From contig CBFFRQ010000044.1 of NCBI GenBank assembly GCA_965644315.1, forward strand, positions 310,001-374,000: a stretch of 64,000 nt of DNA. Direction: 5' to 3'. This document shows positions 12,482-34,007 of the stretch, one piece after another. This stretch comes from Caecitellus pseudoparvulus (taxonomy: Eukaryota; Protista; Bigyra: Bicosoecida). Within the stretch, counting starts at the first letter, position 1. Every line of letters begins with the position of its first letter. The translations under genes and the position numbers were made by a program. The notes beneath the pieces are model-generated. The model was not told where the DNA came from. It made no database searches and worked only from the letters and a program-made list of their open reading frames with translations.

Positions 12482-15226
12482 ATGGCAGACGCGAGCTCCC
12501 CTACGCGGGGCAGCAAGCGCACACGAGACGCAGGGCAGTCCTCAGCACTCTTCTCCACGGAGTCATCGGATGAAGACGTGCCTGCTGCGTCAGCGGACGG
12601 TGACGTAGACTTGTCGCAGTCCAGGGCAGCAGATGGCGCGCCGCTCGACGGCGCCGCCCCCCCCGCACCCAAGCGCCCTCGCTCACAAGGCACCCTGGCA
12701 GCCTTCTTCCAGCCCCGCAAGGCCGCCTCTGCCCCGGCTCAGCGCCAGTTCACCTCCACGGCTGCCGCAGCGGTGGCGGCGGCGTCCCCTGCACCAGCCA
12801 AGCGCAAAGTACGCCAGGCGGCACCCGCTGCTCCCCAGGCCGCAGCAGCTGCAGGGATCGAGTCAGCAGGCAGCGACGACGACGAGGAGGAGGATGATGA
12901 GACGCCTGTGGCTGCTGCGGTCGACAGTGCCCCGCAAGTGTCGGACACGGTGTCTGGCCCGGTGCTGGGGGAGTACCACCCACTGGAGGCAGTGCAGGAC
13001 CTGTGGAAACCGGGCGAACCAGTGCCCTTCCGCGCCCTGACACGTGTGCTGCGGGAGGTGGAGGGCATCACTGGGCGGCACGCGATCCAGGAGCTGGTGC
13101 GGAATTTCTTCCGATCTGTCATCGCGTGTTCCCCCCAGGACCTCCTCCCCGCCGTATACATGTGCAGCTCCAAGCTGGCGCCCGAGGTGGACGGCATCGA
13201 GCTGGGCATTGGCGAGAGCATCCTGACGAAAGCCATCTGCCAGGCCACTGGCCGGCAGCTGAAGGACGTCAAGGCGGCACTGAAGGAAGCGGGCGACCTG
13301 GGGAAGGTTGCGGAGGCGTCCCGCAGCAAGCAGGCGACGCTGGGCTTCGTGGCGGCGCCCAAGCCCCTGCTGCTGCGTGACGTCTTCGCGACGTTCCGGG
13401 ACATCGCCACGAAAAGCGGCAAGGCCTCCCAAGACGCCAAAATATCCCTCATCAAGCGCCTGCTGGTGAAGGCGTCGGGGCAGGACGCCGAGCCTCGGTA
13501 CATCATCCGGGGCCTGCAGGGCAAGTACCGCATCGGTCTGGCAGCCAAGAGCGTGCAGACGGCTCTGGCGCAGGCCGTGACCATCACGCCCCCAGCGGCG
13601 GGGTGCGAGGGGGAGGGCGGCAGTTTCGCGCGGCGCCTGGACACGCGCGTGTCGCCCAGCGGCAAGGCCCGCCCCGCAGAGGCAGTGGACGCGGAGCTGG
13701 CGGCTGCAGATGAAACGCTCAAGCAGGTGTTTTCAGAGCTGCCCTCGTATGACCTCATCGTGCCTGCACTGCTGCGTGGTGGCGTGGCGGCGGCTCGCGA
13801 AGCCTGTTCGCTCACACCCGGTATGCCCGTGACTCCCATGCTGGCCAAGCCCACCAAGGGCGTCTCTGAGGTCTGCACGCGCTTGGAGGGGGTGGCCTTC
13901 ACCTCTGAGTGGAAGTACGACGGCGAGCGTGCTCAGGTGCACAAGATCCCCCCTCGGGCACAGGGCGAGGGGGGTGTCACTGCCGCTGCTGCCGCGTCAG
14001 GCGGCAGTGCGCATATGGGGGAGGCCCGGGGGCAAGGGCACCGCATTTTCTCCCGAAACCACGAAGAAACGACGGGGAAATACCCCGACCTCGCCGCCAT
14101 CCTCGCCAGTGCCGAGCATGCGGCGGGGGACAATTGGCGCCCCTACCCCGATTCCGCAGTGGTGGGCAGCGAGCCGGGGGACATTCTCGCCGACGACGCC
14201 GAGCTGGCCATCGCCGCCAGCAAGGCTGCCTACGACGACTCCCTGGCACTGTTCCCCCACGGTGCCGTGGCCGAGTTGGAGGACTACATCATTGATGGCG
14301 AGGTGATTGCGTACGACCCAGACACGGACGCACTGCTGCCGTTCCAGCGCCTCAGCACGCGCGCACGGAAGGACGTCACGCTGGCCAACATCACAGTGCC
14401 TGTCGTGTACGCTGCGTTTGACTTGCTGTACCTGCAGGGCAAGAGCCTGCTGCAAGTGCCCCTGGAAGTGCGCCGGGCGTTGTTGAAGCGTTTCTTCAAA
14501 GAAGTCCCCGGGAAGTTCCGCTTCGCTGTCGGGTACGACACGTACAGCGGCGACATGGACGCTCTGCGGGGACAATTGGACGCAGCAGTGGAGGGGCACT
14601 GCGAAGGGCTCATGGTGAAGACGCTGCGCTCGAACGCCACATACGAGCCCAGCAAGCGCAGCCTGAATTGGCTGAAGCTGAAGAAGGACTACATGGACGG
14701 CCTGACAGACTCGCTGGACTTGGTGGTCGTCGCGGCGTGGTATGGCAAGGGCAAGCGCACTGGCACGTACGGTGCGTACTTGCTGGCTTGCTACGACGAG
14801 GAGGAGGGGGAGTTCCAGTGCATTACCAAGGTGGGCACGGGTTTCTCCGACGCCGCCCTCGCGTCACACACCAAGTCCTTCAACGAGGACTTGGACCTGG
14901 TGGTGAAGGAGAAGCCCCGCAACGTGAACGCCAGCCCCAACATGCGGCAGGTGCCAGATGCCTGGTTCACGCCGCGGGTTGTGTGGGAGGTGAAGGCGGC
15001 TGACCTGAGCATTTCCCCCATCTACACTGCCGCCATCGGGCGGGTGTCTGCCGACAAGGGCATCGCCCTGCGTTTCCCTCGCTTCCTGCGCATTCGGGAG
15101 GACAAGTCGGCCGAGCAGGCCACCAACGCAGCACAAGTGGAGAGCATGTACCGAGCGCAGCCACTGGCAGGGGGGTCAGGTGGGGGTGTGAGCGTGGAGG
15201 ACGGCATTGGGGAGTACGCCGAGTGA
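12482..15226 (+). CDS. LIG1: DNA ligase I
   Basis: PIP box QGTLAAFF, DNA-binding domain (ELGIGE, RIGLA), motif I EWKYDGERAQ, IIDGE, AFDLLY, EGLMVK, WLKLKKDY, and OB fold ALRFPRFLRIREDK. Confidence 0.97.
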   Translation: MADASSPTRGSKRTRDAGQSSALFSTESSDEDVPAASADGDVDLSQSRAADGAPLDGAAPPAPKRPRSQGTLAAFFQPRKAASAPAQRQFTSTAAAAVAAASPAPAKRKVRQAAPAAPQAAAAAGIESAGSDDDEEEDDETPVAAAVDSAPQVSDTVSGPVLGEYHPLEAVQDLWKPGEPVPFRALTRVLREVEGITGRHAIQELVRNFFRSVIACSPQDLLPAVYMCSSKLAPEVDGIELGIGESILTKAICQATGRQLKDVKAALKEAGDLGKVAEASRSKQATLGFVAAPKPLLLRDVFATFRDIATKSGKASQDAKISLIKRLLVKASGQDAEPRYIIRGLQGKYRIGLAAKSVQTALAQAVTITPPAAGCEGEGGSFARRLDTRVSPSGKARPAEAVDAELAAADETLKQVFSELPSYDLIVPALLRGGVAAAREACSLTPGMPVTPMLAKPTKGVSEVCTRLEGVAFTSEWKYDGERAQVHKIPPRAQGEGGVTAAAAASGGSAHMGEARGQGHRIFSRNHEETTGKYPDLAAILASAEHAAGDNWRPYPDSAVVGSEPGDILADDAELAIAASKAAYDDSLALFPHGAVAELEDYIIDGEVIAYDPDTDALLPFQRLSTRARKDVTLANITVPVVYAAFDLLYLQGKSLLQVPLEVRRALLKRFFKEVPGKFRFAVGYDTYSGDMDALRGQLDAAVEGHCEGLMVKTLRSNATYEPSKRSLNWLKLKKDYMDGLTDSLDLVVVAAWYGKGKRTGTYGAYLLACYDEEEGEFQCITKVGTGFSDAALASHTKSFNEDLDLVVKEKPRNVNASPNMRQVPDAWFTPRVVWEVKAADLSISPIYTAAIGRVSADKGIALRFPRFLRIREDKSAEQATNAAQVESMYRAQPLAGGSGGGVSVEDGIGEYAE

Positions 15227-15343
15227 GGCAATTCAATGTGGGCGCTGTGGTGTTTGGCTTGCGTCGCGCCCTGGCTGGCTCGCTCGTGTTTGGACGCTCA
15301 GTGCCTGAGTGTGCGCATTCGATTTCCGCATCGTGCCAGCGAC

Positions 15344-16518
15344 ATGTCGGCTGCCGCCCGTGCCTTGGCAGGGCTCCCCAGCGCTGCTGCCTACCTCGCA
15401 CGGCACTGCAATGCACAGGGGAGCGTGAAGGCGGGGCTGCTCACCTCAGAACACGGCTCCTTCCTCCTTGCCCAGCTGAGTGCGCCTGCCGCCAGCAATG
15501 CCCTCTGCCCGCGCATGATGCTGCAGCTCGGAGGCTTGCTTGGGACGCTGCAGCAGACGACGCCTGATTGCTGGGGCCACCCCAGTGTCGTGCCGCGGGC
15601 CTTGGTGCTGTGTGGGGAAGGGAGGCACTTCTGTGCCGGGGCACGCTTGGACCGCATGATGCAGCGGCAGACAGGTGAGCGCGGGGCGCACCTGGCATCC
15701 ATGGACTGTGCCGCAGCCCCGCCCAGCCCTGTGCAGTGCCCAAGGGCCAAACGTTCTTCCGCACCCCCTCCCTGCACTTCGCAGGTATTCACATGAACGT
15801 GTTCATGCAGCACATCACCAGCGCGCTGGGCACTCTGCCGCTGCCCAGCATCAGCCTCGTCGGCGGCGCGGCAGTTGGCGGTGGGGCCGAGCTGGCCTCG
15901 GCGACATGCTGGAGGTTCGGCAGTGCTGCCACAAAGGTGCACTTTGTGCAGACTTCGAAGGGCCTGCCCACTGGCTGGGGTGGTGCTGCTGCGTTGTGCC
16001 GAAACGTCAGTCCGCGCGCCGCCAAGCGACTGCTGCTTCCTGCTGGGTCCTCGGCAGCTGAGGAGCTGGCTCAGCTGGGGTGGCTGGATGACGTGCTAGT
16101 GGATGCACCAGCTGATGCCATCGATGGCGTCCACTGGGATGTCAGCAGTGGAGCCCTGGACGCTGTGCGTGGAGCAGCCGTTGGCGGCCCCTCCGCGCTA
16201 CGCGACGCGGTAACGGACGCATGTGCTTCGGAACACGCCAGCACCGACGCTGCAGACTGGCCGACACCGCTGCACAGTGAGGACATATCCGATTTAAGCA
16301 TTGCATTGTTGACACGGTGCGTTTTGCCGAGGTTTGGCTCTGCAGCGGGCGCGCCAGCCTCCATTTGGCGGAGCCATGCGGTGCTGGCCGCTGGGGCAGA
16401 GCCACTCGGCGGAGTGGGGCCTGCACTGGAAAGAGAACGCCAGTTGTTCTGCGAGGCTTGGCGGGGCCCTGCTCACGACGAGGCGCTGCAGGCCGCGGGT
16501 GTGGCACTGCCAGACTGA
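15344..16518 (+). CDS. ECHDC1: Crotonase-superfamily protein, ethylmalonyl-CoA decarboxylase (ECHDC1)-like; intron 15675-15784
   Basis: Motifs FCAGARL, LPLPSISLVGGAAVGGGAELA, KVHFVQ..KG..TGWGG and C-terminal ERQLFCEAWRGPAH. Confidence 0.7.
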
Positions 16519-16530
16519 CGCGCAGGTCGG

Positions 16531-19500
16531 TCACTGCTGTGCAGCGTCTTGCAGCGTCACACAGGACGCCGAGTCGTCCACATCCACGCCACTGGCCACA
16601 CGGTGAGGGATGGCAATGGGGGCAAGGCGCTGGGGCGGCAGGGTCACGTGGCCTGTACGTGTGTGTTCGCCTGTCAGGGCTGTGTCTCTCTCTGGCACGT
16701 CGGCGGGGGCGCCGTCCAGGGTGGGGGACAGTGGGTGCATGTCCGAGGCGCTGACGGAGGCAGAGCGACCATGCCGGGGGCTCATGCCTGAAATGTTGGG
16801 GTCCATGGTGGTGCTGGTGTCGCGGGGCGCACAGCCCATGGCGCTGCCACCAGTGCACTGGCGCAGCAGGCCATCTGGCGGTGGGCTGAGCCCCGTCGCA
16901 GACTCGACATCACTGACCCCAGCAACGTGCAGCGACGTTGCTGGGGCACCCCCGCCGTCCTTGCCCAGGCTGGACCTGTCGGGCAGGGCGCCCCGAGTGG
17001 ACCCATCCACCACCGGCTCCCGCAGCGTCTCCACGACAGCCAGGAGTTTGTGCAGGATGGGCACGGGCGCCTCGGGCAGGTGGTGCAGGATGGCAGACAC
17101 CAGCAGCGCCACCGTCTGGTCAAATACATCGTCAGTGATGCCCAGATGTGCGTGCCCCGCCGCCATGTCCTTCCCAGAGTACTTCACATCGCCAGCGCCC
17201 AGAACGGTGGAGATGAAGGTTTCCTGCAGGTGCCGCATGCGGCCCATGGCGACGTTCTTGAAGAACGGCGCCGTGGCGGGGTGTGACACGAGGAAGATGT
17301 AGAACGTGTCCACCACGGCGTGCACGGCGGGGGCACCGCCAATGGCCTCGTAAATCGTCTTGCCACCCAGCACTTCAGCCAGCGCTGCTTCGTTGGCCTC
17401 TGCCTGCTCAGCCAAGGTGGTGGAGGCAGGCAAGCCCGCCGACAGCAGCTGGCTCAGCTGACCCTTGAGCTGCGCAAAGGTCTGGAAGGGGATGTCGTTG
17501 CAGTGCATGTGCAGGGCCAAGGGTTTGGGCAGCGCGGCACAGCCATCGCGGTTCACGGCGTTCAGGACGGCTGTTGCACCTTGCAGCTGCAGGCCGCACC
17601 AGGACACATCCAGATGTTGCAGCTGGCCCCGAGCGGTGCAGTGGGCGATGCCAGGCGCCATGAGCTCTGCGCCCGCGGGGGCAAGGTCCTTGTTCCCTGT
17701 CAGGTTCAGGTGTGTGAGGGTGGTGCTGTCAGACAGCAGGCGGGCCAGGGCTGCGCCGTGCAGAGGCGTCAAGCCGCAGTGGGCCAGGCTCAGCTGCGCG
17801 ACGCGGCTGTGCACGAGGGCCGTGACGAGCGTGTCCAGCGTGCCCGGGGACAGGGGGATGTGGGACAGGTCCAGCTTGGTCAGAGGCGTGTACTGCACCA
17901 GGAACGCCCCAAGGCCGGCAAGCGGCGGCACGGAAGCCGAAGGTGAAAGTTCGGGCGCCGGGCCGAGGCAGTTCAGTTGTGCGGCGCCAGTCTTTTCAGT
18001 GGGCGGCAGAAACAGCTCTTCGTTGCCTGCCAGGGACAGGCCCGAGACCATGATGGCAGCGTTGGTGGAGATGGCGCCGAGGGTGAGCTGCATGTTGGCG
18101 GGGGACACCTCGTTGAAGGAAAGGTCCAGGAACATTCCCGACACGGCGCCTGACGCGGCGCGGGAGGTGGCTAGAGCACGGTACAGCGCGCTCCAGGTAG
18201 AGTCGGGGAGGCCCACGAGTGACCGGCGTAGGTTCACCACTCGCGTCTGGGGCCCAGGGACAGCGACAGCGCCCTTGGCGGCGGGGGCGTCCCCCGCTGC
18301 ATCCCCTCGCGGTGCCGAGGCAAGCAGCCCAAGCGTCTTGGCTTCCAGGCCAGTAACAAAGACACCGAGGGCGATGTTGCGGGTGGTGAATGCCACAGGC
18401 AGCAGCAAACCCAGCCATGCGGTGGCCAGGATGTACTGTGCGTTGGTGGTGGGGAAGGCCAGCGACAGCAGCGCCATGGTGTTTGTGAACAGGATGGCTG
18501 CCAGGCCGCCCAGGACATAGGCATTCCAGGAAGTACTGAAAAAAGGCTGGCTCAGGGCCACGGCCGCCGCTGTGATCACGCCCAGCGCCAGGAGCAGGGC
18601 GATGTTGACGGCTGATGGCAGCACGTCGCGAAGCAGCCCCAGCACGAGCGCCATCATCACCTTCAGAAGCATCATGGCCAAGGCGAAGCCGGGGTTGCGG
18701 TCGGCACCCAGCGCCAAGGCGGTGCCCAGGCGGGCCTTGGAAATGGCGTCATGCCGGCTGTGCTCGTGGTGCCAGCCAACTGCGACAAGGGCAAGCACCA
18801 GAGCCACGGCGAAGGTGGAGGAAGCTACGTGGGCTGGGCTTGCACAATCAACGTCAAGGAAGCTCGCGACGCCGCCGGCACAGCCACAGGCAGAGAAGAG
18901 GAACCTCGCTGCAGGGATAGCCAGGAAACTCTGCTTCAGGGTCAGGTTCAAGTGCATGCCTTGCACGATTGTGCTGCCCAGGCTGGTGTGTAGGTGCTGC
19001 AGCGGCACCAAAAGCAGGACGGCGTCTGCCGCGACGAGCGCAGCCAGCGACACAAGCACCGCCAGGTTCACAACAGAGGGCAAGGGGACCTGTACATGAT
19101 TGGGAGCGGCGGTACTGCGTGATTTCTAGCGCACAGGTGCGCGCTGCAGAGATTCGCACCTCCAAGTACAGGACTCGCCCTGCCCCGCCAACGAATTGCA
19201 CGAGGGGGTCAGGGAAGCCGACTTCGAACTGGAATGGCGCCACCATGATCTGAGCAACAGTGGCCAGGAACCCTGCGAGGCAAGGCACGCAGCGTGGCGG
19301 GCATGCGCGTGGCTGCCGCCTCGACTTCCAGTGCACTTCGCGTTCACGAACCCAGGGCTGGTGCAGCTCGAAGCACCGTGCTCCACCATGACGCCCACGA
19401 CGCCTGCTTTGACAGCGCAGCCCTCCCAGCAGGCGTGTTTGTGGAAGGTAGGCTCCGTTGGCGCAGCAGCATGCGACGAATGGCTTCGTCTGCGCTGTTG

Positions 19501-19589
19501 CGGCGGTGTCTTGACAGCCGCCGTTTCGGCACAGCTGACGCAGGTCCACCAGACGCAGGCGCCAGCGACGGCGACTTTGCCTCCTCCAT
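16531..19589 (-). CDS. Multi-pass membrane protein + RNI-like LRRs + group I (2/2) truncated hemoglobin; introns 19273-19351 and 19090-19159
   Basis: About 7-8 hydrophobic segments, followed by LRRs (LTKLDLSHIPL, LSLAHCGL, LTHLNLTGN, LQHLDVSWCGL). The globin domain reads TIYEAIGG...VDTFY...APFF...LQETF...LGAG..YSGKDMAAGHAHLGITDDVFD. Confidence 0.85.
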
Positions 19590-19629
19590 GGCAGCGGGCT
19601 GGAGGTGACAGGCAACGTACAAAGGCGCC

Positions 19630-19637
19630 TTTATAAA
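19630..19637 (-). promoter_or_regulatory. Palindromic TTTATAAA, candidate TATA box of the globin-fusion gene
   Basis: Lies ~41 nt upstream of the predicted ATG at 19589. Confidence 0.4.
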
Positions 19638-20766
19638 GTGGGTGGGGTTGATGGTGCATTGGTGGGATTTTTGTCCAGCTAGTGCGTGTTTGGGCGCCCG
19701 ACTTCGGATGCTTCCGAGTGGCCGGGTTGATGAGGAGGCATCAATCGACGCCGCTGGAAGCGCCTGGGCCGCGCCAATGCGTCGCGAGCCTGCGTCAAGT
19801 GGGGCTGGTCGCTGGGCCCCGATCCGGCATGGACGGAGTGGATGCTAGGGAACGGTGCCAGTGCGAAAGGTCATGGCTGTGTCGAGCATTGGCAGGTCAC
19901 GCTGCTGCCTCAGGTCTGTGAGTCTGAGCTCCTGTCAAGCTTGTGGTCGGCTTCACACGCACGTATCGGCTTCAAGGAAGCGTGGACCCGAGGCAACCAA
20001 TGCAGCTTGGATGTTTGCGTGGCCTCTGGGTGCTGCTGCTGTGTGCTGGCGCTCACATGGTGGGGCTTCGTGTCGGTTCGCGGCCAGGCATCGTGACGGC
20101 TTGTGCGTGCTCGCAAGTCCCCGAGCAGACAGGAGCTCGATGAGCCCCCCCCGCACAACTTTCAGCGCAGTGTACCCACCTAGGGGGCTCATGTGCACGT
20201 GCTCGTTCAAGCTTTCGTTGCATGAGGTGCGTCCTGGGCGGGGGTGTGCGGGAGTGAAACGCATCGCCACCTCGCCTTCTGCCTTCAGACGCCAGAGGGT
20301 AGCCTTGCGTGGGCTCTCAGTGACTCAGAGGACACCACGACCAAACATACTAGGCGTGAGTACCTAAACTTAGGTCGAACAGTGCCCCCACTGCACATCT
20401 TGCGAACAAAGGCGCTCATGGGTTGCAGAGGGTGAAACGGCAGGTCCTCTGGTGGTGCCTCCGCTGTCTGCAGATATTGCAGCTCGTGGCGGCAACTAAA
20501 ACACACACATCATTGGAGTAAACTGATCAGTTCTCTGTGGCAGCGTTTTTGTGTGCTGCACCGCTGTTGCTTTCGCTGAAGGTGTCGCTTCTGCGGGGCT
20601 GAGCCTGCAGCTCGCTGGCAAGGTGGGGCATTGGCGTGGCAGACAGGCTTTATTCTGTTCGCTGTGACCAGGACAGGAGTAAAGAAATCTCATCCAAGTC
20701 GATTCTTTTGTCGGTTCGTGCTGTCGTCTCCACGCTGCGGAAGGCGAACCTCCCCAGCTGTCCGAC

Positions 20767-21664
20767 ATGGTGCGTGCTGCACGGCAGGCCTGAGCTGGTG
20801 TGCTTGGCAGATGGGCAGCTTCCCACGCTGTGCACGGCGCAGTTTGCGCTATTATCTGGTCTCATTGAATGGAGCTGCTCCAAGACGCACGCGTTCGTTC
20901 CGATCCTGGGGCTTGACCATGCTGGAAAGACGGTGTGTGCTGGCCTGAAACGTGCCTGAAACGTGGCACCCCCTGCAGGCGCTCCTGGCGCTTGAGCGCA
21001 GACTCTGCTGGAGCAAATGAAAGGGATGTACATCGATGATCGTAGACGGGCTGATCTGGACCGCATTCCGCCCACGATCGGCATGAACGGTGCGTGCTGA
21101 TGCCTGCGCCGACCTCGACACTCAGCAGCCACCCGGCCAGTGGCCACTCTCCCGTGCTCAGTGGGGAAAATGGACATCCTCAGCACGACAGTCACCTTCC
21201 AGGACCTGGGCGGTCACATGCGCAATATTTGGGGTCAGTACTACCAGGAGGCGTCAGGAGTCATCGTCGTGGTGGACGCAGCAGATGGCCGCCGCTTGCC
21301 TGAGGCGGTTGCGGCTGTGCAGGGCATCCTGTCGTCACCCCACCTGGCAGGCGTGCCTGTCCTGATCCTGGCCAACAAGAACGACAAGGTCGGTGCGCTG
21401 GGCGCGAGGGAGCTGGCAGGCTTGCTGAGCCTCCACAGCCCAAGCGGCGGCGGTGGCGGTGGCGTTTCTGCTGCAGCCACAGCGGCTGCCGGCACCAGCA
21501 AGCCTGACGCTGGCACGCTACTGGATGCCTCCAGTGCTGACCGACAGCTGGTGGTGGCGTCCACCTCCACCCTGGCGGGGGAGGGCATTGCAGCGGCGCT
21601 GGCGACATTCATTCCCCACGTGCGGAGTTTAGCGGCCAGTGGCAAGCGGGAGGTGACTCACTGA
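20767..21664 (+). CDS. ARFRP1: ARF-related small GTPase ARFRP1/Arl3p; introns 20770-20842, 20933-21001, 21090-21161
   Basis: Spliced protein reads M|FALLSGL...ILGLDHAGKT|TLLEQ...PTIGMN|V...DLGG...ANKND. The non-myristoylated MF-x-LLSGL N-terminus is typical of ARFRP1. Confidence 0.85.
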
Positions 21665-21731
21665 TGGGCCCAAGCGTGCGCTGTGACTGCTGCCATCCCT
21701 AACCTACTGTCTGCGTTGCATTGGCGCGCAG

Positions 21732-23537
21732 TTATGGGGCATTCGCCTTGCCCTTGCGAGCCTGCAGGCGTGACTCCAGCCAAGACAGCACCGCCAGGGA
21801 GATGGGACCAGGGGCACCGTCGGGGGGGGGCTGCACCTCCACCCGAGCCCCAGCACTGCCGTGCTGTCCACTAGCCTGGCCAGCTGCCGCAGCCTCGTAG
21901 AATGCACCCCGTGCTGCGCGGCCGGCGTGGCCGATTTTGCCTGTGGTTGGCGGCAGTGCGTGGGCTGCGCTGGGCACGTGGATGTTGGCTGTTTCCTCGT
22001 GTTGCAGGGGAAACGCCGGCAAGGCAGGTGTGGCGAGCTGTCCTGCTGGTGAGGTGATGGTGAGGGGCGGCGGAGGCGAGCCTGTGTCCCCGCTGGGCCC
22101 GTGGGAAGGTTGCGCTTTCGGCGCCATTTCCGCCCACGGGTCAGGCGTGGATGTGGCGGGGGGAGGGGTCGGGGCAGAGGGGGGGAGGTCCACTGCCAGG
22201 TCCACAGGGTGCCCTGAGCAGTTGTGCAGTGCCAAGGTGGCGGGGGCCGCAGCGGCGAGGGACGTGGGCGAACCAGCAGGCAGTCGAAGTGTGGAGGTGC
22301 CGGTGGGCGGCAACTCGTCCCAACTCACGTGGGCAGTGACTGGCCCTGCCTCCGCTGCGCCGTGCAGGTGCACATGCCCCTTGAGGCCCGTGACATCCAC
22401 GCTGGGCGCCGGTCCGGCAACGCAGCATGTCACCTCGCCGTGAGTCACCCGGCTGCTAAACCTGTCAGCACAGTGCACGTCTAGCCGCTGCCCGTAGAAC
22501 GCGCGGATGTCCACTGGGCCTGCTGAGTGCAGGGCGGCGTTGAACACGAAGATTTTCTTGGCAGTGATGGGCCCACCTGCCGTCACGTTGACTTCCCCCG
22601 ACAGCAACGCAGCAGACACGCTGCCGCCTGCGCGCAGGGCCACCTGCAGTCCTCGTAGCTGGTGTGCGGAAATGGATCCCCCTGTGGCGACGCTGATGAC
22701 CCACGCATCAGCCTTATCGCTGATGGTGACGTCCGTGTCGTGGTGGCTGTGCACGGCAAAGGACTGGCGCTGGGGCAGTTGGATGCGCAGTTTGCAGGGG
22801 GGGCAGGGGGAGTCACCCAGCTCCAGGTGGGCCTGAGTGAAGCGCTGCCCCTGCCGCCCCTCCATGGGCTGGGCGATGTGGAAGGCCTCCCACCCCGGCT
22901 GGTCGGGGGTGAGGGCGGGGGGGGGGGGATTGGAGGCGGCTTCTGCGCCAGCCTCTGCTGCGTGGCAAACCCGGACGGCTGCGGTGGGCACGGCAGCGTC
23001 TGGCGAGGGCGTGACGATGCTGGCTTTCAGGTCTAGAGTCCAGGTGGGGATGATCTGTGCTCAGGTGCGCCCTGGGGGGTGCCGTGGTCCGCTTGTGGCG
23101 GCGTGGCTGTGCGCCACGTCAGGCAGCCGAGGCGGGGCACGCACCTCCACTTCCGTCACGCAGGCTGGAGGGTTGATGCACAGCAAGGCGTCAGCCTGGA
23201 CCAGGCCCCGAACATCTAGTACGTGTCCAAACTCGTGACCTCCTGGCTCAGCCACTGCGAGGGCGTGCAAGTGCTGGAGGTGGGGCGCATAGCAGAGACG
23301 GCTGAAACGCCGAGGAAACGCACGCTCGTCATTCAGCGCGTCCCTGCGCGAGCCAGTGTTCACCACTGGAGCTTGGGGGGCGCTTTCTGTGAGACGTTTA
23401 CTCTCAACTCCATAGAAACGGGTACCCTCAGGGGCAGGCAGCAACGAAAGGCAGGGTGCCCGGGCACACCGCCGTGCCGCCCTGTGAGTTACCTGGCGCA
23501 GAGCTGCCCCTGCTGCCCTGGCGCCTGTGCGCAGCAT
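21732..23537 (-). CDS. DUF4097/FAM185A-like beta-repeat protein, possibly mitochondrial; 5' exon structure uncertain
   Basis: Repeated 'T-G-G-x-I / A-G-G-x-V / G-P-V-D-I' beta units in ORF 21732-22991. The upstream MLRTGARAAGAALRQ is presequence-like and is followed by a GT donor. Confidence 0.45.
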
Positions 23538-25125: not shown

Positions 25126-26857
25126 ATGCCCCGGCCTCCGCACCATCCTGGCACATGGGACTTGCATGCTTGCTCTGGATGGTATGGTGTGCTCCCAGAT
25201 GACTCCATCGGTGCCGGAGGAGTGGCAGCGCTTGAGTGCGCGCCGGCTGGGACTGCCTCCACCGCAGCCCGCCACTCTTCCTCACTGCAAGCACACAGCG
25301 CCAGTGCACACACCTCCCGCCTTCAGCAGTCGAGTACGCCGAGTCTTGGACCCACGTTCCGCGAAAGCTGGTCACATTTCCTCTGCGATGCCCAGGCTGG
25401 GGGCGGGGTGCACTCTCGACTGGCTCACGTCGCCGCCTCACTGCAGCCAGCTCCAGCTCAGCAGCGAGCCCGCACGACGGCACAAGAACCCGCCCCCCTC
25501 CCTGCTCCGACCCTGGGTGCGCCTTGTGTTGGGCCTGCCTTCCTGGGCTGTGCCCCAGACGTGGTTGTTCCTGGCATGCCTCCCGGCAAGCGTCTGCCAA
25601 GCAGCTCTCCTGACCCCCCCCCCAGTTGGAGGCGTCCCGCCCCCCGCCCAACGCCGACGGCCACACCACAGCACATTTATCAGCTGGAACATGTACATCT
25701 GGGGCCTCCTTCTCGCCCTGCTCCCTGCCCTGCGCCAGCCAGCCACAGCGGCGAGGAAGGCAGCAGCACGGAATTCGGTCAGGACACAGGCGTCGTCGAG
25801 GTCTCCTTTCCATCGCGTGGCGAGGTAGTGCACCCAGGCAACACACATGCACGGACACTTTCTGCCGTGAACACGGCGTGTATGGTCTCACAGCACGGGA
25901 CTGCGGCGCGTGGGGTCGGTGGGGAGCCGCCTTCACAGAGCAGTTTCCGCGACCCTCGACCAGAAGTCTCTGCTGGACATGGCGCACCCTGCCCCAGCCA
26001 GGCGGGAACCAGTAGCGACTGTGTGGCCCCAGCTTGGATACCGCAGCCAATGGAGGCCCTTGCTGCTCCTTTTTTGGCCCGCACGGCCACGGCTGCAGCC
26101 TCGGGGGGCAAAGGAGGTTTGAGCTCGCGTGCGACTGGCCGGGCGACGAATGCGTCGTCGAGCCGGCGAGCCGACAGCCGCTCCGCCCAGCTCACCAGGC
26201 ACATCGAGGCGAGGCTGGGTATCGGGCCACACAAGCCCTCAGCGCACGACGTGCTCGGGCGAGAGGCTGCCGCACTGCAGGGTGGGGACGCGGCCTTGCG
26301 AGCAGAGGAAGCACGGCAACGCAGCCTCTTGCCACTTCAAGTGAGTGACCCTGGCACTTTGGCTGCAGCCAGCTCGTTGCACCGCGCCCTACACTGCGCC
26401 TGCCACTATCTGCCCCCATCCCACCCCCCCCCTTCCCTCCCTCCTCCACGCACAGTTTCGTTCGAAGCGAGTCTTGGCGTTTCAGCCTCGTGAGAACCGG
26501 TGGGTGTCCACCTTCACGGAGCTGCAGAGTCGACGGCAGATGCGGCTGTACGCCTCCTCTGCCCTGCTGTGCGCCCTGCGCCGGGACTTTGTGCGCCTCG
26601 CCGATGGCATCCGGCCCCGCAAGGGCGAGTCTGAGACCAGCACGACGTGGGTGGTTCTGGCCAACCCACACATGACGTCGTTCTTCGTGCAGCGAGTGGG
26701 CACGGGCACCATCCAGGGCAAAGGCACTCTGCAGTACCGCAATCTGAGGTGGGTGGGACCACACCCAGATGAAATGGAGGCCGCTTCACGCCGCATGGGC
26801 GCACTGGTTGACATGGACAACTGGCGCGACATGCTGCGAGCTGCTGGGTGGCTATAG
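25126..26857 (+). CDS. Paralogue 1 of an unrecognised family: low-complexity N-terminus + conserved C-terminal (AP2-like?) domain; intron 26341-26455; start uncertain
   Basis: PLQ|FRSKRVLAFQPRENRWVSTFTE...RLYASS...LRRDFVRLADGIRPR...WVGPHPDEME...DNWR is shared with the two downstream genes. Confidence 0.7.
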
Positions 26858-27462
26858 GTTGCAGCAGCGGGCACAGAGCTCACGCCCGTGGGGGGTTGCC
26901 TGCCTGCTGCTGTGCCGCAGGGGCTGTGGTGCGTGCCCTTGGGCACCCCAGCACTGCCCTTCCCAGCGGTGCAGGCTTGATGTGAAGTACCATGCTGGGT
27001 CGCCCCAGCAAACCCCACCGAAGTCATTGGTAGGGACTTGCAACCGTGCAAAGCGAGCAGTGGCACTGCCTGCTGCGCTTAAGGGTGTCGGAGGCTCCCC
27101 AGGGCAGGCTCGTCGAGCAGGGGCTTCGTGCACCTGCTCTCCGAAGCCTGCCAAGCGTTGCTCGCCGTCGCTGCAGTCGTCGCCCTGTGACCCCGCCGAA
27201 GCGCGGTGCCCTGCGCCACGCCGCCTGCGGCGCAAAGTCAGCGTGGGTGGAACGCAGCTCCATTTGATCATGCCGACCTGCACCTCTTTGCCACACCCTT
27301 TGCTCTGGGAGCCATGCGCAGCGTCTGTGTCCACCACAGGCACGCCTCTTCCCGAGCTTCTTGCGCGGCAGTGCGCCAGCTGCATGGAAGGCTGAAGCTC
27401 GCTGAAACATGCTGGGGCCGCGCGGAGCACGAATGGAGGGAGGCAGGTCTTGCCCTCCCCCC

Positions 27463-27470
27463 TATAAATA
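27463..27470 (+). promoter_or_regulatory. TATAAATA candidate promoter upstream of paralogue 2
   Basis: Perfect TATA consensus in a long GC-rich spacer, but ~700 nt from the likely ATG. Confidence 0.3.
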
Positions 27471-28160
27471 CACTCAAGCCTCTACCCTCTTCGTCCCTCG
27501 GCCTAAAGCAAGCTAGCAGCGGTGCAGCTGGCACCGTGCGGGTGTTCAGCTCCACGCCTCCGCACTTCTGCGCCTGCTGCCACACGGTGCGACGAGCTTT
27601 GCGGCGGGGCAGGAGCCGTGTGCGGGACAGTGGATCAGCCTAAAGCACCTGTGACTCCCTGCTGGCTCCAGCCCTCGCTGCAGCACTGGCAGTGGCGTGG
27701 GACGGCGCGGGCGGCCGAATCAGGCAACGTGAGCATGTGCTGGACTGTGGCGCTTGGCAGCTGACACGCCGCGCGCAAACGTCGCGACGCCAGGGGCAGG
27801 GCGTGCGGGAGCAAGGCAAGCCCGAATCCTGGCCGACACGGGTGGGCCACTTGCTCTCACCCTTCATCGAGCGGAGTTCGTGAGGTTGGCTTGGCAGGGG
27901 CGGTGTGGGGGGGGGGCGCGGCGCGCAGTCACGCAGCTGCCTGCCAACACTCTTCTGGCGCGCCGTCTCAAATCCAAAGCCACCTCTACCCCGCTCAAGA
28001 AACCACAAGAATCCACTTTCCTTCTCATCACTTATCGCCCTGTGCACTCTTTGTTGCGTGTCCGTGCCACCTGCCGGTGTCACGACCACATCCGTTCCGT
28101 GTGCGGAAAGCTTCGTTGGGAAGCAAGGCCTCTCACCAGCTGCCAAGCCCCACTCACGCC

Positions 28161-29699
28161 ATGGCCCAGCGCCACACTGCCACCCTCAACCAAACAACCG
28201 ACACGCACAGCATGCTCGGTGGGGTCAAACGAGCCCGCCCTGAGCTCCCCGATCACGCTGCCTGGCTGCCTGGTGCTCGCGGTGGCAAGCGAGCTCGCTC
28301 AGCCGCCGCTGGCGATGCGCTCACAGCCAACTGGCGATGCGCTGCCCCCACCCAAACCATGCCCTGGCCGCCGGCACCGCCTGTGCAAGTTCGAGCAGCT
28401 TCACACAGTGTGCCTGTTGGGCATTTCATGCCGCAGGCTCGGCGCACGGAGGGGGGGGGCAGCGTTCCGCCCTGTAAATGGAGCCCTGCACCGCTGGCCA
28501 CGAAGTTCGCCGGCGAGGCACTCCTGCCGCCCCACACCTTCACCTACTGGGCGGTGCAACCAGGCCCAGCACAAGCAGGTGTCCCCAAGAACATGCCCGC
28601 ATTCCCGTTGCCGCAGTGTGTGGGCGGCCTCCCCGCCCCCGGCGCTGCGTCTGGCGTGTCAGGCTGGCGGGGGGTCATGCACCCCCCTGCACCGGATTCT
28701 CAGCCAGGGACAACCAGCCACATGGCAGGGGGCGACCCCGCTGGCCTGGGCGCCCACCCAAGCAGCTCGCCTCGCCTGGGCACGCCCCTGGGCTCCTGTG
28801 GCCCCCCTGCACCCTCCTCGCAGCCCGTCGCTTGGCAGGGCGCTTGGCCACCGCGTGCCCTCGCAGGGCCTGCGTTGCACACGCAGGGCATATCCGACGC
28901 AGAGCTGCTGCGCCGCGCAGCTGCCGGTGCTGCCTTGCGAGGCATGCTCGGCAGCAGTTCTGGCAGGCCGGCCATGCTGCTGTTGCCGCGCAGTGTGCGT
29001 GGTTCGCGGCTGCATCGGTCGCAGAAGCCGGCTTCGTCGCGCTCGGCACCGGGCGTGCGGGCGCAGTTTCTGCAGCTTCGACAGGCGGTGGAAGCGCAGC
29101 GCCTGGAGCTGCCGTGCCAGTTCCAGGGCTCCCGAGTGCTGAGCTTCCAGCCCACTGAGCGCAGGTGGTTGACTGTGTTCACGGAGTTCAAGACACGCCG
29201 CCAGGTGCGCCTGTACGGGCCGTCGGCGCTTGCGACGTGCTTGCGGCGGGACTGGGCGCGCCTGAGCAGTGGAACACGCCCACGTCTGGGAGGGGCCTCC
29301 CGTCGATGCACTTGGATCACCATGATTTTCCCAGAGATGTTCGAGGAGTTCTGTCGCATCGAGCAGGAGAACGGGGGGGGCAGCAACCCTCGCGAGCCCA
29401 CGTGCCCTGCGCAAGAATGTGCAAGCAGCACAAACCACACGCTGTGCACGCGCAGCGGCCTGGCCCTGAACCGCCCTTCCACACCCACGTCTGTGAGCCG
29501 ACCTTCCCTTCGCACGGGGCACGTGGTGTGGGTGGGCCCCACTCCTGACGAGCTGGACGCAGCGGCTGAGCGTCTGGGCATGCCCCTGCGCCTGGGCAAC
29601 TGGCGCAGCGTGCTGGCAGAGGCCAGGCGCAGCCCCAAAGGCACTCTCTCGGCTTGCACACCCTCTGATGCCAGCTCCTGTGACAGTACGCACTTCTGA
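28161..29699 (+). CDS. Paralogue 2 of the same family (start uncertain)
   Basis: LPCQFQGSRVLSFQPTERRWLTVFTE...RLYGPS...LRRDWARLSSGTRPR...WVGPTPDELD...GNWR. The N-terminus is Pro/Gln/Ala-rich with two KRAR NLS-like motifs. Confidence 0.7.
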   Translation: MAQRHTATLNQTTDTHSMLGGVKRARPELPDHAAWLPGARGGKRARSAAAGDALTANWRCAAPTQTMPWPPAPPVQVRAASHSVPVGHFMPQARRTEGGGSVPPCKWSPAPLATKFAGEALLPPHTFTYWAVQPGPAQAGVPKNMPAFPLPQCVGGLPAPGAASGVSGWRGVMHPPAPDSQPGTTSHMAGGDPAGLGAHPSSSPRLGTPLGSCGPPAPSSQPVAWQGAWPPRALAGPALHTQGISDAELLRRAAAGAALRGMLGSSSGRPAMLLLPRSVRGSRLHRSQKPASSRSAPGVRAQFLQLRQAVEAQRLELPCQFQGSRVLSFQPTERRWLTVFTEFKTRRQVRLYGPSALATCLRRDWARLSSGTRPRLGGASRRCTWITMIFPEMFEEFCRIEQENGGGSNPREPTCPAQECASSTNHTLCTRSGLALNRPSTPTSVSRPSLRTGHVVWVGPTPDELDAAAERLGMPLRLGNWRSVLAEARRSPKGTLSACTPSDASSCDSTHF

Positions 29700-32197
29700 A
29701 GCGTGCATTGCGCAGGTGCGGGGCGCACGTTGCGCCGCTGGCAGGCTGTCCGCGAGCGGGGCACCCCCCCCCCCCCCTGACCATACTCGCCGCAAGCTCA
29801 ATGCAGCTAACCCTTCCCCAGCCACCACAACAGCTCGGCATGGTAGCTTGCCGCAGTTCCTTCACCGCTCTCTGCGCAGAGGCGCGCCCCTCGTTGAGAC
29901 TGCTGCATCTCAAGGAGAAGGCGAGAGAAGGCCGGCCCGACGCAAGACTGACACCCCTGCGCAGTGCACACACAGCACCACATTAAAAGGAAACAAGGCC
30001 ATTGGGTTTCACCCGATCCATTGCAAAGCCCACGAACTCCCTGCCGCTATGCTGAGTGTGCCAGCCTGTCCAAGCCCCGGTAGCAAGCGGAAGAGGCAGA
30101 GAGAGACGGCAGCGGCATAAGGTCCTTCGAGCATCAGCTGGCGGTCACCCCCCCCCCACCCCCCATGCCACGTCGCGGCGCAGCAGCTGCAAGTTCCAAG
30201 CCTGACGAGCAAGGCTCAGCTCTCCATGGGCACTCCCTGTGCCCTCCTGGGCGGCTGTGGTAAACAGCGTGCAGGTCATGGGCGTGGCGAGGAGGAATGG
30301 GTGCTGGTGTGATGGGGCAGAGAAGTGGGGGAAGGGGAGGTGGGTGCGGTTTGTACACTGGCACAGCAGCGGAGTACGTACAGGCGTGAACAGGGAAGAG
30401 CTTCGCTGAAATGACACGTGGAAGGGGCTATTGGAGCAACCACCTGATGCCTGGCACGCTGGCGCACCCGTGCGCGTCTGCGCCTTGATGGCTTTCCCTC
30501 TCCACCTTGCGCTGCCAGTGCGAAGTGGACTGCCGCCGTTCCAAACGTTACAGGCAGTCACTGTAACGTCTCCTCGTCAGAAACAGACCAATTCGCGCCG
30601 TGCCGGGCTTTGGGGCCGGTCCACACGCCAAATGTGCTGATATTCAAAGCATGGCTTGTCTGGGTGCGCTGGGCGGGGCTGAGCACGCCGTACAAGGCCG
30701 CGGTGAGCCGGCGTTGTGTCGGGCAGATGGAGTGCGCCAGCCACGTCGTGCGGTTTGGCCTGCTGAGCGCCCTTCAAGAGGAGTACTCAGTTCAGTGGCG
30801 GAAGGTGCCCATGTTCGTGTCGCTGAGACCAGGCAATTGTATCACGGCGCATGGGATGGCGAAAGGACACGCCGCGGCGTCTGAGATGTCGACGGGATTG
30901 CCGAAACGCTAAACGCGAAACGCGCCGCAGGTGAAGTGAACGCAGTTCGCGCTCGCTGCTCGATTCCTCGACTTCGCGGCAGCCTCAGCACAACGCCACG
31001 TGTTAGCAGAGCTGGCGACCACACGCGAATGATTCGGTCCCACTACTGTCCTTGGTATAGCGCTCCAAGAAAGGCCTGGGGAGAAGCTGAGCGACGCAGC
31101 GGCTCCAGCGGGCACGTGCCCTCCAGCTGGCTTCGCCCAGAGCGGAGCTCCTCTGAGGTTGAGCTCGGGAAAGCACTGTGTACGGGTGGGAGAAGGCAAG
31201 CGCCCTGTTCAGTCCCCCTCTCGTCGCTTGTTTTGAGCTCAGAGCTGTGCGTACGTCACAGGAAGGTGACACTGCACTGATGCGTTTTTGATGTGGGCGT
31301 GTCCATCTACTCGCCGCACGGCGGAGGCATTCCCGCGCCATGCTCGCGCCCTGTCCCTTCCGACGCTGCTGCCGGACGAAGTTGTGTTGTTCGACGTTGC
31401 CATATGTTGGGCAGTGTGCAGCTTACCTCGCTCCGCCCTCGGCGAGTGCGCCTTGGTCTACTTTCTTCAAGCTGTGACATGGCAACTTCTGCACAGCGCT
31501 GAGCAGTGTGGGCACATCAGAGAGGTGCCTGCAGCGCGCAAGCCGTGCGTCCGGAGGCGACGCCGCTTCTCAGGCCGACGACCACCCCGGAAAAGCTGCT
31601 TCTGGCACTGCTCATGCGGCACTTTACTTTACACGCGTCTCGCTGTGCTGCGGCGCGCGCAGGCTGGGAAGTTGCTCGGCGGCGGGATGGCAGCCGCTGC
31701 CGCCTTCCTTCCGGCCGCTGTCTCAGTGCCGAGCTGGGAGTCCACAAAACACCGGGCCACCCCGCCGGGGAGTCAGCTGCGCGCATATGCGTAGTCCGGG
31801 CACTACCCCGCGCTCCACATGCAAAACCACATATTTTCACCTACTTACAAGCAATTCGCCCGCCAGCACCGCCGCCGGTCGCCTCAACGCTCGTCCAGCA
31901 GCTCTGTCGAGGCCCAGCAGGTGAGTTTTCCCACGGTGTGACGGCGCAGGGACAGCGCAGGCCGGCCCTGAGCAAGGACGGCCGCGCTGCTCCCATATCC
32001 GCAAACCACACCCATGCTTCCTGCAGCAGCATTCTCACCTCCCCGTGCCCTTTCACTCTCCCACGCACAGACGCGCATACGCGCAGCGGGTCGTGACAAG
32101 CCGGGGTGCACTCAGGCGCACTCCCAACCAACCCTGCAGCTCCCTGCCCCTTGAGCGGCAGGTCAGGACACAAGCCACAGCCCACACTTCGCCCGAA

Positions 32198-34007
32198 ATG
32201 GCAAGCACCGGCGAAGCCTTGCTTGCGAAAGCGGCGGTGCGTGAGCGCTGGTGCCGCTTCCGCGTGGCGGCACGCCTGACGCGTGCCTCACTGCCACCTC
32301 CCCGCCGCTCTTTGCACAGGCGTCAGCGCTAGCGCCCACCTGCCCCTGGGCGATTGGCAGCCCTGCGACCGTGTTGTTGCTGCACAGTGCGGAGGATTCC
32401 CCCGAAGACGTCGTGCTGCACGTGCCGGGCGGCGAGCCGGCCCTGCCCAGCAACCAGGCAGGTGCAGGGAAGTGGCCAACCGTGCCATGCCCACGCCAGC
32501 CTGATCAGTCCAGGGAAGACAGCCCCTCGCCCGTTGCCTGGGCACAGCAGACACAGCAACGACTGCAGCAGACCCCTCCGCTGCCCCCTTCCATGCCTGG
32601 CTTGCATGGCAGTGGCAGTCCTGTGTATTCCGGTCCCCAGGCAAACCTGCAGGCTGCGTCAACCTCCGCGCACGGGGCAGAAGGGCTCTGGCAACCCCAA
32701 GACGGCACGCCAGAGCCGCAGGCCCAGTGGGAGTACCCGCAGTGGCAAAATGCCGTGTCCCAACCGTACACTTCGATGCCTTCTGCGCAACTGCAGGCTC
32801 CTAGCCCTGGCTTTGCCGGCGGGTCTTTCACCGTGGCGCCGCCCGCCATTGGCCAAGGGAGGGCACCCGCTCCCATGACAAGCCAGGGGGGGGGGCTGTT
32901 TGCAACGGGACCCCTGCCCCCACATGCCGCTTGGCCGGGGCAGGCACCGCCCCATGCCGCCGCCAAGATGCATGCGCAGGGGCAGGCGTGGGCGTGGCAA
33001 GGAAGCTCAGCGGGCTATGCCGCGCAAACAGCCCCCGGCGCCGCACCTTACCAGGCACCGCAGCTGACGGCAGGGCAGGGCATGCCTCAACCAAAATGCG
33101 TGCAGCCAGGCCAGACTCTGGGCAAGGCAGAGGTTGCGCGGCAGCGCAGGTTGGTGCCCAATCAGTTTCGGGTAGGTGCAGGCGGCTAGCCACCCGCAAT
33201 GCTGCCTCTGCGCGTTTTCGCCTCAGCACCACTCACGAGCTCCCCCCTCGTCAATTTTACGCAGTCGGACCGTGTCGTGACGTACCAGCCCAAGCTTGAC
33301 CGATGGGTGCGTGCCCAGAGCCCCGTGTGGGCCGCAGGCTGGGTCGCCAGCCTCAGGGGCAGCTTTGGCGTGGCGACACACGCGCCGTTACACGACAGCA
33401 ACTGTCCACCACACTTTGCACTGCCCTCCCGCTCCTGGCACAGGTCACAACCTTCACCTCCATCATCACCGGGCGCCAAGTGCGCGTGTACGGCACGTCC
33501 CTCTTTTCGGCCGCCTTGAAGCGCGACTTTGTGCGCCTGCGTGACGGCATTCGGCCTCGCACTGGCGCCTCCTCACTTTCCTGCTCCTGGCTTGTGCTGA
33601 GCGTGCCAGGCCTCTTCTCCTCACTCTGCCGCCGCAGGGGCACGGGCGTCGTGGAAGGCAACGGCACCCTGCGGTTCCAAGACTTCGCCTGGCTGGGCCC
33701 TGACCCGTGGGTGCTGGAGGACGCTGCGAGCGCAGCGGGTGTTGCGTTGGACGGGGACAATTGGCAAGCTATCTTGCAGTTGGCAGCCAGGGCGACAGGC
33801 TGCCCGGCCAACGCAGAGCATGCGCCCCCTCTAGCCCAGGACATTGCAGAGGGCCGCCTATACACCCAGCGAGAAGCTGCCTCCGTCACGTATGCCGGCG
33901 TGCAGGGTGGCGCGTTTCCTGGCCGCCCAAGCACCGTCGGTGCCTGCGGCGCCAGGCCACTGCTCCTGCCCAGCCGTGCCGGTGTGGCTTCCATGACACC
34001 CATGTAG
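32198..34007 (+). CDS. Paralogue 3 of the same family; introns 32237-32319, 33172-33264, 33307-33443
   Basis: Spliced VPNQFR|SDRVVTYQPKLDRW|VTTFTS...RVYGTS...LKRDFVRLRDGIRPR...WLGPDP...DNWQ. The N-terminus is Gln/Pro-rich. Confidence 0.75.

Follow-up and report, generated by a model that had tools for sequence, protein, structure and literature searches.

What are the three neighboring genes at ~25126–26857, ~27891–29699 and ~32198–34007 of the window, and what might their proteins do? The window, which means here the whole stretch of 64,000 nucleotides analyzed, comes from the bicosoecid Caecitellus pseudoparvulus (contig CBFFRQ010000044.1, referred to as C44, of a 30.6-Mb eukaryotic assembly) and has a GC content of ~65%. 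The three genes, referred to as copies 1, 2 and 3, are all on the + strand. Our results suggest that they belong to a small, lineage-restricted family of nucleic acid-binding regulators, most likely nuclear DNA-binding proteins, and we give this reading a probability of about 0.4. That these proteins bind nucleic acid, reside in the nucleus and act as regulators is in each case an inference. In each of them, a two-part domain at the C-terminus would be preceded by an extended disordered region rich in Pro, Gln and Ala. In the first ~55 residues of this domain, which are strongly basic, an antiparallel sheet of three strands is predicted to pack against a helix in an AP2/ERF-type fold, and the Arg/Trp-bearing sheet would contact nucleic acid as that of AtERF1 does. 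The next ~75 residues are predicted to form a new alpha/beta module that comprises two short helices, four short strands, WxGPxP, a helix, NW and a further helix. This module would pack with the first half into one globule, where it may stabilize or extend the binding surface or mediate contacts with partners. The trio originated from old tandem duplication and appears to be kept under purifying selection.

All three proteins share a C-terminal domain of ~135 amino acid residues, of which the whole copy 1 domain has 133. The domain is contiguous in copy 1 (26456–26854), lies at 29109–29642 within the open reading frame (ORF) 27891–29699 of copy 2, and is split over three exons in copy 3, whose boundaries are at 33171, 33265–33306 and 33444. 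For copies 1 and 3, the spliced models were searched and aligned one exon at a time. The pairwise identities among the three domains ranged from 41 to 45%, and 30 positions were invariant in the part of the alignment present in all three rows. The consensus was (QR)xxxPxQF / RVxx(F/Y)QPxxxRW / xxFT / RRQxRxY / L(R/K)RD(F/W)xRLxxGxRPR / W / WxGPxP / G / NW. In the N-terminal portions P, Q, A, G and S together accounted for 54–64% of the residues, and pairwise comparison of these portions gave no alignment better than E 0.5. The earlier note on this DNA had described a co-oriented trio with unalignable N-termini and a common domain of ~130 residues, and positions, strand and alignments agree with this description. 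The consensus that it gave is correct against the trio alignment, and the KRAR motifs resembling nuclear localization signals that it reported for copy 2 are present in the ORF translation (VKRARPE...GGKRARS). Such basic patches were found in copy 2 and in many relatives, for instance KRKRTR, KKRRR and KRPAE...KRAA.

The domain had also been called unrecognized, and the sequence searches bear this out. Pfam returned no family at E up to 10 for all exons and ORFs of the three copies and no domain for eight relatives, and no nuclease or recombinase domain was found in any member. A search of PHROGs returned nothing, and a profile search of PDB sequences with the whole domain gave 0 hits. The only Pfam row, LAL_C2 at E 0.054, was dismissed as noise. 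The isocitrate-lyase fragments retrieved by the feature search of the ESM Atlas (0.80–0.81) were also rejected, because their scores were at the level of shuffled sequences. The same genome encodes five canonical AP2 domains, which scored 25–32 bits with the Pfam AP2 profile and are found on contigs C17, C46, C69 and C96 (L011–L015). An alignment of these domains (A3) matched plant AP2 structures in PDB at 1e-24 to 1e-10, including WRI1 at 8e-24 and ERF at 1e-10 to 1e-13. They are of the plant type and unrelated in sequence to the trio family. When the N-terminal half of the family domain (A4) was compared with A3 by hhalign, the probability was 0.9%, with E 0.063 and a score of 12.8, and the register of the alignment was as expected. 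Although plant-like, each of the five AP2 domains was under the Pfam gathering cut-off in the six-frame search.

The predicted structure is where the likeness to AP2/ERF emerges. The copy 1 domain was modeled by AlphaFold2 from an alignment of 8 sequences, and all structural statements below refer to prediction. The mean predicted local distance difference test score (pLDDT) was 83.6 and the predicted template modeling score was 0.77; by block, pLDDT was 91–95 over residues 11–50 and 67 over residues 1–10. The predicted elements are three strands (7–10, 15–21 and 28–33), a helix (36–49), short helices (66–77), four short strands (78–99) and two further helices (104–114 and 123–129). The whole domain had no significant match in the structure libraries, but its compact matches were strikingly alike. 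Among its Foldseek matches in PDB, the AP2 domains of TEM1, AtERF1 and WRI1 aligned over 45–53 columns at 2.4–4.2 Å with E 0.6–2.3, and that of PfAP2 (3igm) aligned over 44 columns with a root mean square deviation (rmsd) of 12.0 Å. When the PDB matches were re-examined, AtERF1 on GCC-box DNA (1gcc_A) ranked first, with 58 of 63 residues, an rmsd of 2.6 Å and a Z score of 4.5, although, according to the tool itself, a Z score below 8 may stem from a common arrangement. An unbiased scan of 48,161 PDB representatives placed at its top a chain of the Toxoplasma gondii mitoribosome (9hqv_Yn, Z 4.0), WRI1 (Z 3.8) and AtERF1 (2gcc_A, Z 3.8, 60/63). Its top 50 also included ERF96, TEM1, the AP2 domain of PfSIP2 and the N-terminal domain of Tn916 integrase (Z 2.9, and 2.3–2.9 when the re-examination is included). 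Two more T. gondii mitoribosome chains, 9g6k_Lk and 9i05_XH, were matched at Z 3.2 and 2.9, respectively; the three chains may include AP2 proteins of that ribosome. Moreover, dozens of viral models from phages and giant viruses were superposed over ~48–50 residues at 1.5–2.4 Å, with Foldseek probabilities up to 0.99 and identities of 6–20%; many of these models bear the name AP2/ERF-domain protein or HNH endonuclease. The structural search of the ESM Atlas retrieved three clusters with a template modeling score (TM) of ~0.4, namely Streptophyta AP2 (TM 0.43), phage HNH_3 and tyrosine recombinase. Double-stranded RNA-binding domains (dsRBDs) were matched on residues ~3–53 at Z 2.2–2.9 in the unbiased scan, in which AP2 chains scored higher. 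The dsRBD fold is alpha-beta-beta-beta-alpha and begins with a helix; the family model has no helix before strand 1.

Similar to AP2/ERF domains (PF00847; AtERF1, 1gcc/2gcc; WRI1, 7wq5; TEM1, 7et4), the first ~55–60 residues of the family domain are predicted to comprise three antiparallel strands and an amphipathic helix with a Gly near its end, in the same topology and size; Arg and Trp residues are located on or beside the predicted strands, and the half is strongly basic. In the trio and its closest homologs, the isoelectric point (pI) of the N-terminal half ranged from 11.4 to 12.0 and the net charge from +8 to +13 in 60–65 residues. The corresponding half of the L004-type branch was less basic (pI 9.8–11.2, net +3 to +5), and the C-terminal halves were mostly near neutral or acidic (pI 4.3–10.3). 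In an alignment of 10 N-terminal halves, two residues located on the predicted strands or next to them, R5 and W16, were invariant; R15, R26, R27 and R30 are common in the branch of the trio, and L(R/K)RD(F/Y/W) stands where RAYD would be. Different from AP2/ERF domains, the family domain lacks the canonical motifs YRG, WLG and RAYD as such, has no detectable sequence relationship to them and carries, fused in one predicted globule, an extension of ~75 residues that AP2 proteins lack. Thus, of the AP2/ERF pattern that had been read into the letters, the predicted order of three strands and a helix stood, in that a three-stranded sheet plus helix of ~60 residues is present in the model and AP2/ERF domains are its best matches, but a relationship at the sequence level did not (hhalign, 0.9%). 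The family is not demonstrably a member of AP2; its first half is predicted to adopt an AP2/Tn916-integrase-type DNA-binding fold, and its second half appears to be new.

The second half could not be assigned by the earlier note, and neither sequence nor structure searches gave a credible match for it. Modeled alone from an alignment of 26 sequences, it had a pLDDT of 78.1 and the same secondary structure as in the whole-domain model. Foldseek returned nothing credible for this model (E 1.1 or worse, rmsd 8–15 Å), and the best Z in the unbiased PDB scan was 2.4, obtained with small helical domains from replication proteins. A PDB profile search with the C-terminal half found only a protelomerase and a dynein-like chain, both at E above 1. 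The former was a match of 23 residues between profile positions 47–69, which correspond to the last helix-loop-helix (copy 1 ~26760–26830), and residues 228–250 of Agrobacterium protelomerase TelA (KMEKIANKHGALITFENYRQVLK), at a chance-level E of 1.1–1.6. An assignment to tyrosine recombinases, Cre or protelomerases was rejected, as the TelA match was at chance, Cre gave an rmsd of ~13 Å and Pfam found no Phage_integrase.

The VARL/RegA clusters of volvocine algae, which encode SAND-domain regulators, consist of tandem paralogs in which only one domain of ~100 amino acid residues aligns and the flanks are rich in Gln, Pro and Ala. Compared with them in gene organization only, the family is similar in its tandem clusters and low-complexity flanks, and a W..P...(K/N)W-like motif precedes the last helices. 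The gene organization and this motif suggested SAND/VARL for the C-terminal half, which was rejected: Pfam found no SAND at E up to 10, and structures with the SAND fold, a five-stranded sheet plus helices with a KDWK motif, were absent among the fold matches of the whole domain and of the C-terminal half. The family is not a member.

Several results weigh against the reading of the trio as DNA-binding regulators. Sequence methods (Pfam, PDB profile and hhalign) detect no AP2 relationship. The structural scores of the predicted model are weak in absolute terms (Z ≤4.5, Foldseek E ≥0.05), and the predicted strand-strand-strand-helix unit is a generic one, for which dsRBDs score only slightly lower. 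In addition, the sheet region is missing or unrecognizable in distant paralogous repeats, the second domains of L007 and L008. What is invariant in the family is instead the helix LxRD(F/Y/W)xR, a Pro and W...WxGPxP...G...NW of the C-terminal half, namely L41, R43, D44, R47, P54, W65, W99, G101, P102, P104, G115, W123 and A130. As the sheet is lost in distant repeats, the family-wide core may therefore not be the AP2-like sheet. Finally, the C-terminal half in the model could cover the face of the sheet that AP2 domains use for DNA.

The loss of the sheet from some repeats and the location of the family-invariant residues also suit a module that serves protein-protein interaction or structure and has no role in nucleic acid binding, whose core would be the LxRDFxR helix plus the WxGPxP...NW half and whose AP2 likeness would be convergent or generic. 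Every AP2 score was below the usual significance levels and the C-terminal half had no fold match, as such a module would also allow. However, the extreme positive charge is restricted to the N-terminal half, this half is strongly conserved within the subfamily of the trio, and AP2-type matches were overrepresented among the top hits in each of three independent structure libraries, so that we regard an interaction module as possible but doubtful. Alternatively, the AP2-like half could bind RNA and the proteins could function in RNA metabolism, possibly in an organelle. The mitoribosome of T. gondii contains four AP2 proteins, mtAP2-1 to -4, that bind rRNA fragments through arginines (PMC11652630). 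Similar to the family modeled here, they represent an AP2-fold module in a protist protein and show that the fold can bind RNA; different from it, their domains are recognizable ApiAP2 domains. Chains of this mitoribosome were among the best structural matches, dsRBDs were among the matches as well, and the N-terminus of copy 3 (MASTGEALLAKAAASALAP...) is rich in Ala and Ser with few charges. However, the matched chains may be other proteins than these AP2 proteins, and long Gln/Pro/Ala-rich regions and KRAR or KRxxxxKR patches are more typical of nuclear regulators; we consider RNA binding unlikely.

The viral and mobile-element matches raise another origin for the family, as the domesticated remnant of an HNH-AP2 homing endonuclease, or of a tyrosine recombinase/integrase with an AP2-like arm-binding domain, of which only the DNA-binding part was kept. 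In phages and giant viruses, the AP2 modules of HNH homing endonucleases share the strand-strand-strand-helix fold predicted here, as does the N-terminal arm-binding domain of Tn916 Int. Viral AP2-type models, many named HNH endonucleases, were the most numerous compact matches; the HNH_3 phage and tyrosine recombinase clusters of the Atlas, the Z scores of the Tn916 integrase N-terminal domain, the weak TelA match of the last two helices (E ~1) and the clustering and duplication of the copies all point in the same direction. Different from these elements, the family has no nuclease or recombinase domain in any member by Pfam, and its genes are eukaryotic, spliced, syntenic cellular genes at a locus that is shared among relatives and not mobile. 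Moreover, the Cre alignments are meaningless at their rmsd and the protelomerase match is at chance level, and we rate such an origin as quite improbable. It would nevertheless be compatible with the reading of the trio as DNA-binding regulators, since DNA binding would persist in a domesticated protein.

A more specific form of that reading, which we advance only tentatively and hold to be rather unlikely as a whole, is that the family represents an undescribed class of sequence-specific DNA-binding transcription factors in one GC-rich aquatic protist lineage. In such a class, an AP2-fold module, either too diverged for sequence methods or independently evolved, would be welded to the new WxGPxP...NW alpha/beta module, and the class would be diversifying by tandem duplication and by internal domain duplication. 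The regulators of marine picoeukaryotes are mostly inferred from homology to plant, animal and fungal families, and lineage-specific DNA-binding families therefore go unseen. The domain described here is small, soluble-looking, confidently modeled, without database annotation and expressed in the sea, which makes it a testable candidate. If DNA binding were true, it would be a new branch of the AP2/Tn916-integrase fold class or a convergent copy of it and would open a way to study how genes are regulated in this lineage; if not, it would illustrate how far function can be deduced from a strand-strand-strand-helix motif.

The trio proved to be a part of the family and not the whole. A profile search of the same genome with the C-terminal half gave eight matches, which were the trio on C44, three on C42 and two on C67. 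The family genes on C42 carry two domains each, and the pair on C67 sits within one frame of 833 codons. Overall, the genome contains about six family genes with at least 8 domain copies in three clusters. An extra degenerate repeat in the L004 frame, seen by eye only, would make nine domain copies.

Outside this genome, a word-indexed search found three proteins (P0001–P0003) at E ~1e-40 that were 43–47% identical to copy 2, the member of the trio closest to them; the N-terminal half was the best-conserved part in this comparison. When 1.84 billion representatives were searched exhaustively with a profile, 27 matched at E 1e-3 or better. About 25 of these are real clusters, and several of the real ones are fragments of this species' own genes. 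P0028 and P0029, which are giant bacterial proteins of the cadherin/RTX and low-complexity kind, were excluded as false positives. The family members come from metagenome contigs or fragmented assemblies with 55–60% GC, in which the genes are mostly intron-less. These numbers agree with the lineage restriction proposed before.

A relative with 55% GC already has two tandem family copies. At L009:6791–8198, an ortholog of copy 2 is followed by a gene similar to copies 1 and 3, in tandem and on the same strand, and at L016:10001–20692 P0024 and P0018 lie 6 kb apart on the same strand. Because these relatives keep family genes in tandem or nearby, the duplications are old and clustering is habitual in the family. 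The locus is also syntenic in another relative. L010:124–7788 corresponds to 12959–22790 of the window, with genes for DNA ligase I (74% identity), enoyl-CoA hydratase, Arf and a protein of 430 amino acid residues followed by a family gene. Both the tandem pair of the 55%-GC relative and this synteny accord with the old duplications that had been suspected from the window. The genes for enoyl-CoA hydratase and Arf are adjacent in L010 and 4.7 kb apart in the window, and a REX1B-like gene of L010 has no match in the window.

The gene models of the trio are as follows.

25126..26340, + strand: copy 1 upstream coding exon, encoding a low-complexity Pro/Ala/Ser/Gly-rich N-terminal region that ends in ...QRSLLPLQ.
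26341..26455, + strand: copy 1 intron of 115 nt, GTGAGT...CACAG, phase 0, predicted from sequence, directly 5' of the FRSK of the domain.
26456..26857, + strand: copy 1 domain exon and TAG stop, with the AP2-like basic half at ~26456–26620 and the C-terminal half at ~26627–26854.
27891..29699, + strand: copy 2 as a single long open frame whose first ATG is at 28161, with KRAR...KRAR near 28210–28300.
30033..31920, + strand: transcribed leader 5' of copy 3, covered by X1/X2 contigs 30033–31258, 30382–31645 and 31253–31917.
32071..32236, + strand: copy 3 exon with ATG 32198 (MASTGEALLAKAA), splice joints in X1 and X3, frame tracked exon by exon.
32320..33171, + strand: copy 3 main N-terminal exon, Pro/Gln/Ala-rich, 284 codons, supported by RNA contigs, ending in ...QRRLVPNQFR.
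33265..33306, + strand: copy 3 micro-exon of 14 codons, SDRVVTYQPKLDRW, predicted strands 1–2 of the AP2-like sheet, RNA joints on both sides, both GT..AG.
33444..34007, + strand: copy 3 last exon, rest of the domain (VTTFTS...NWQAILQLAA, to ~33800), tail and TAG stop.

The start codon of copy 1 is uncertain, being ATG 25126 or 24877 in a frame open from 24754. Its intron is supported by the homologs P0001–P0003, which have an uninterrupted LPxQF|RGSRV across the join. In copy 2, metatranscriptome contigs cover 28461–29287. Its domain is interrupted by an in-frame insert of 54 codons (29358–29519) in a loop whose length varies across the family. By eye, the insert has no convincing splice sites, and no RNA contig was found on 29400–29999; it may be an intron or a disordered loop.

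RNA for copy 3 came from a seawater metatranscriptome (X1 and X3) and from X2. The loose end of X2 is a SMART template-switch oligo, and X2 is therefore a cDNA run. RNA-derived contigs define four GT..AG introns, 31921–32070, 32237–32319, 33172–33264 and 33307–33443, and the micro-exon joints 33170>33264 and 33305>33443 are present in both X1 and X2. Translation could alternatively start at an in-frame ATG at 31787, in the exon preceding that with ATG 32198. RNA contigs cover 30033–31917, and splicing joins the last of them (31253–31917) to the coding exons. Copy 3 therefore either has a leader of up to ~1.9–2.1 kb, made up of one or more long 5' exons, or the part upstream of 31253 belongs to a separate transcript.

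The trio genes are real, as copy 3 is spliced and expressed and the domain exon of copy 1 is constrained. The latter was compared with a metagenome contig from a strain that is 93% identical in DNA. Exon 1 (1217 nt compared) and the domain exon (399 nt) were free of indels, whereas the intron was 88% identical with 20 gap columns, and indels were confined to the intron and flanks. The ratio of nonsynonymous to synonymous substitution rates (dN/dS) was 0.18 for the domain exon and 0.46 for exon 1. For copy 3, the strain variant P0008 was identical in the domain part, whereas several residues differed within the stretch of its ORF that derives from the intron. For copy 2, the strain variant P0009 differed at 9 positions of the insert (8 substitutions and one inserted residue) and at 1 position in the rest of the domain; the insert thus evolves much faster between strains than the remaining domain.

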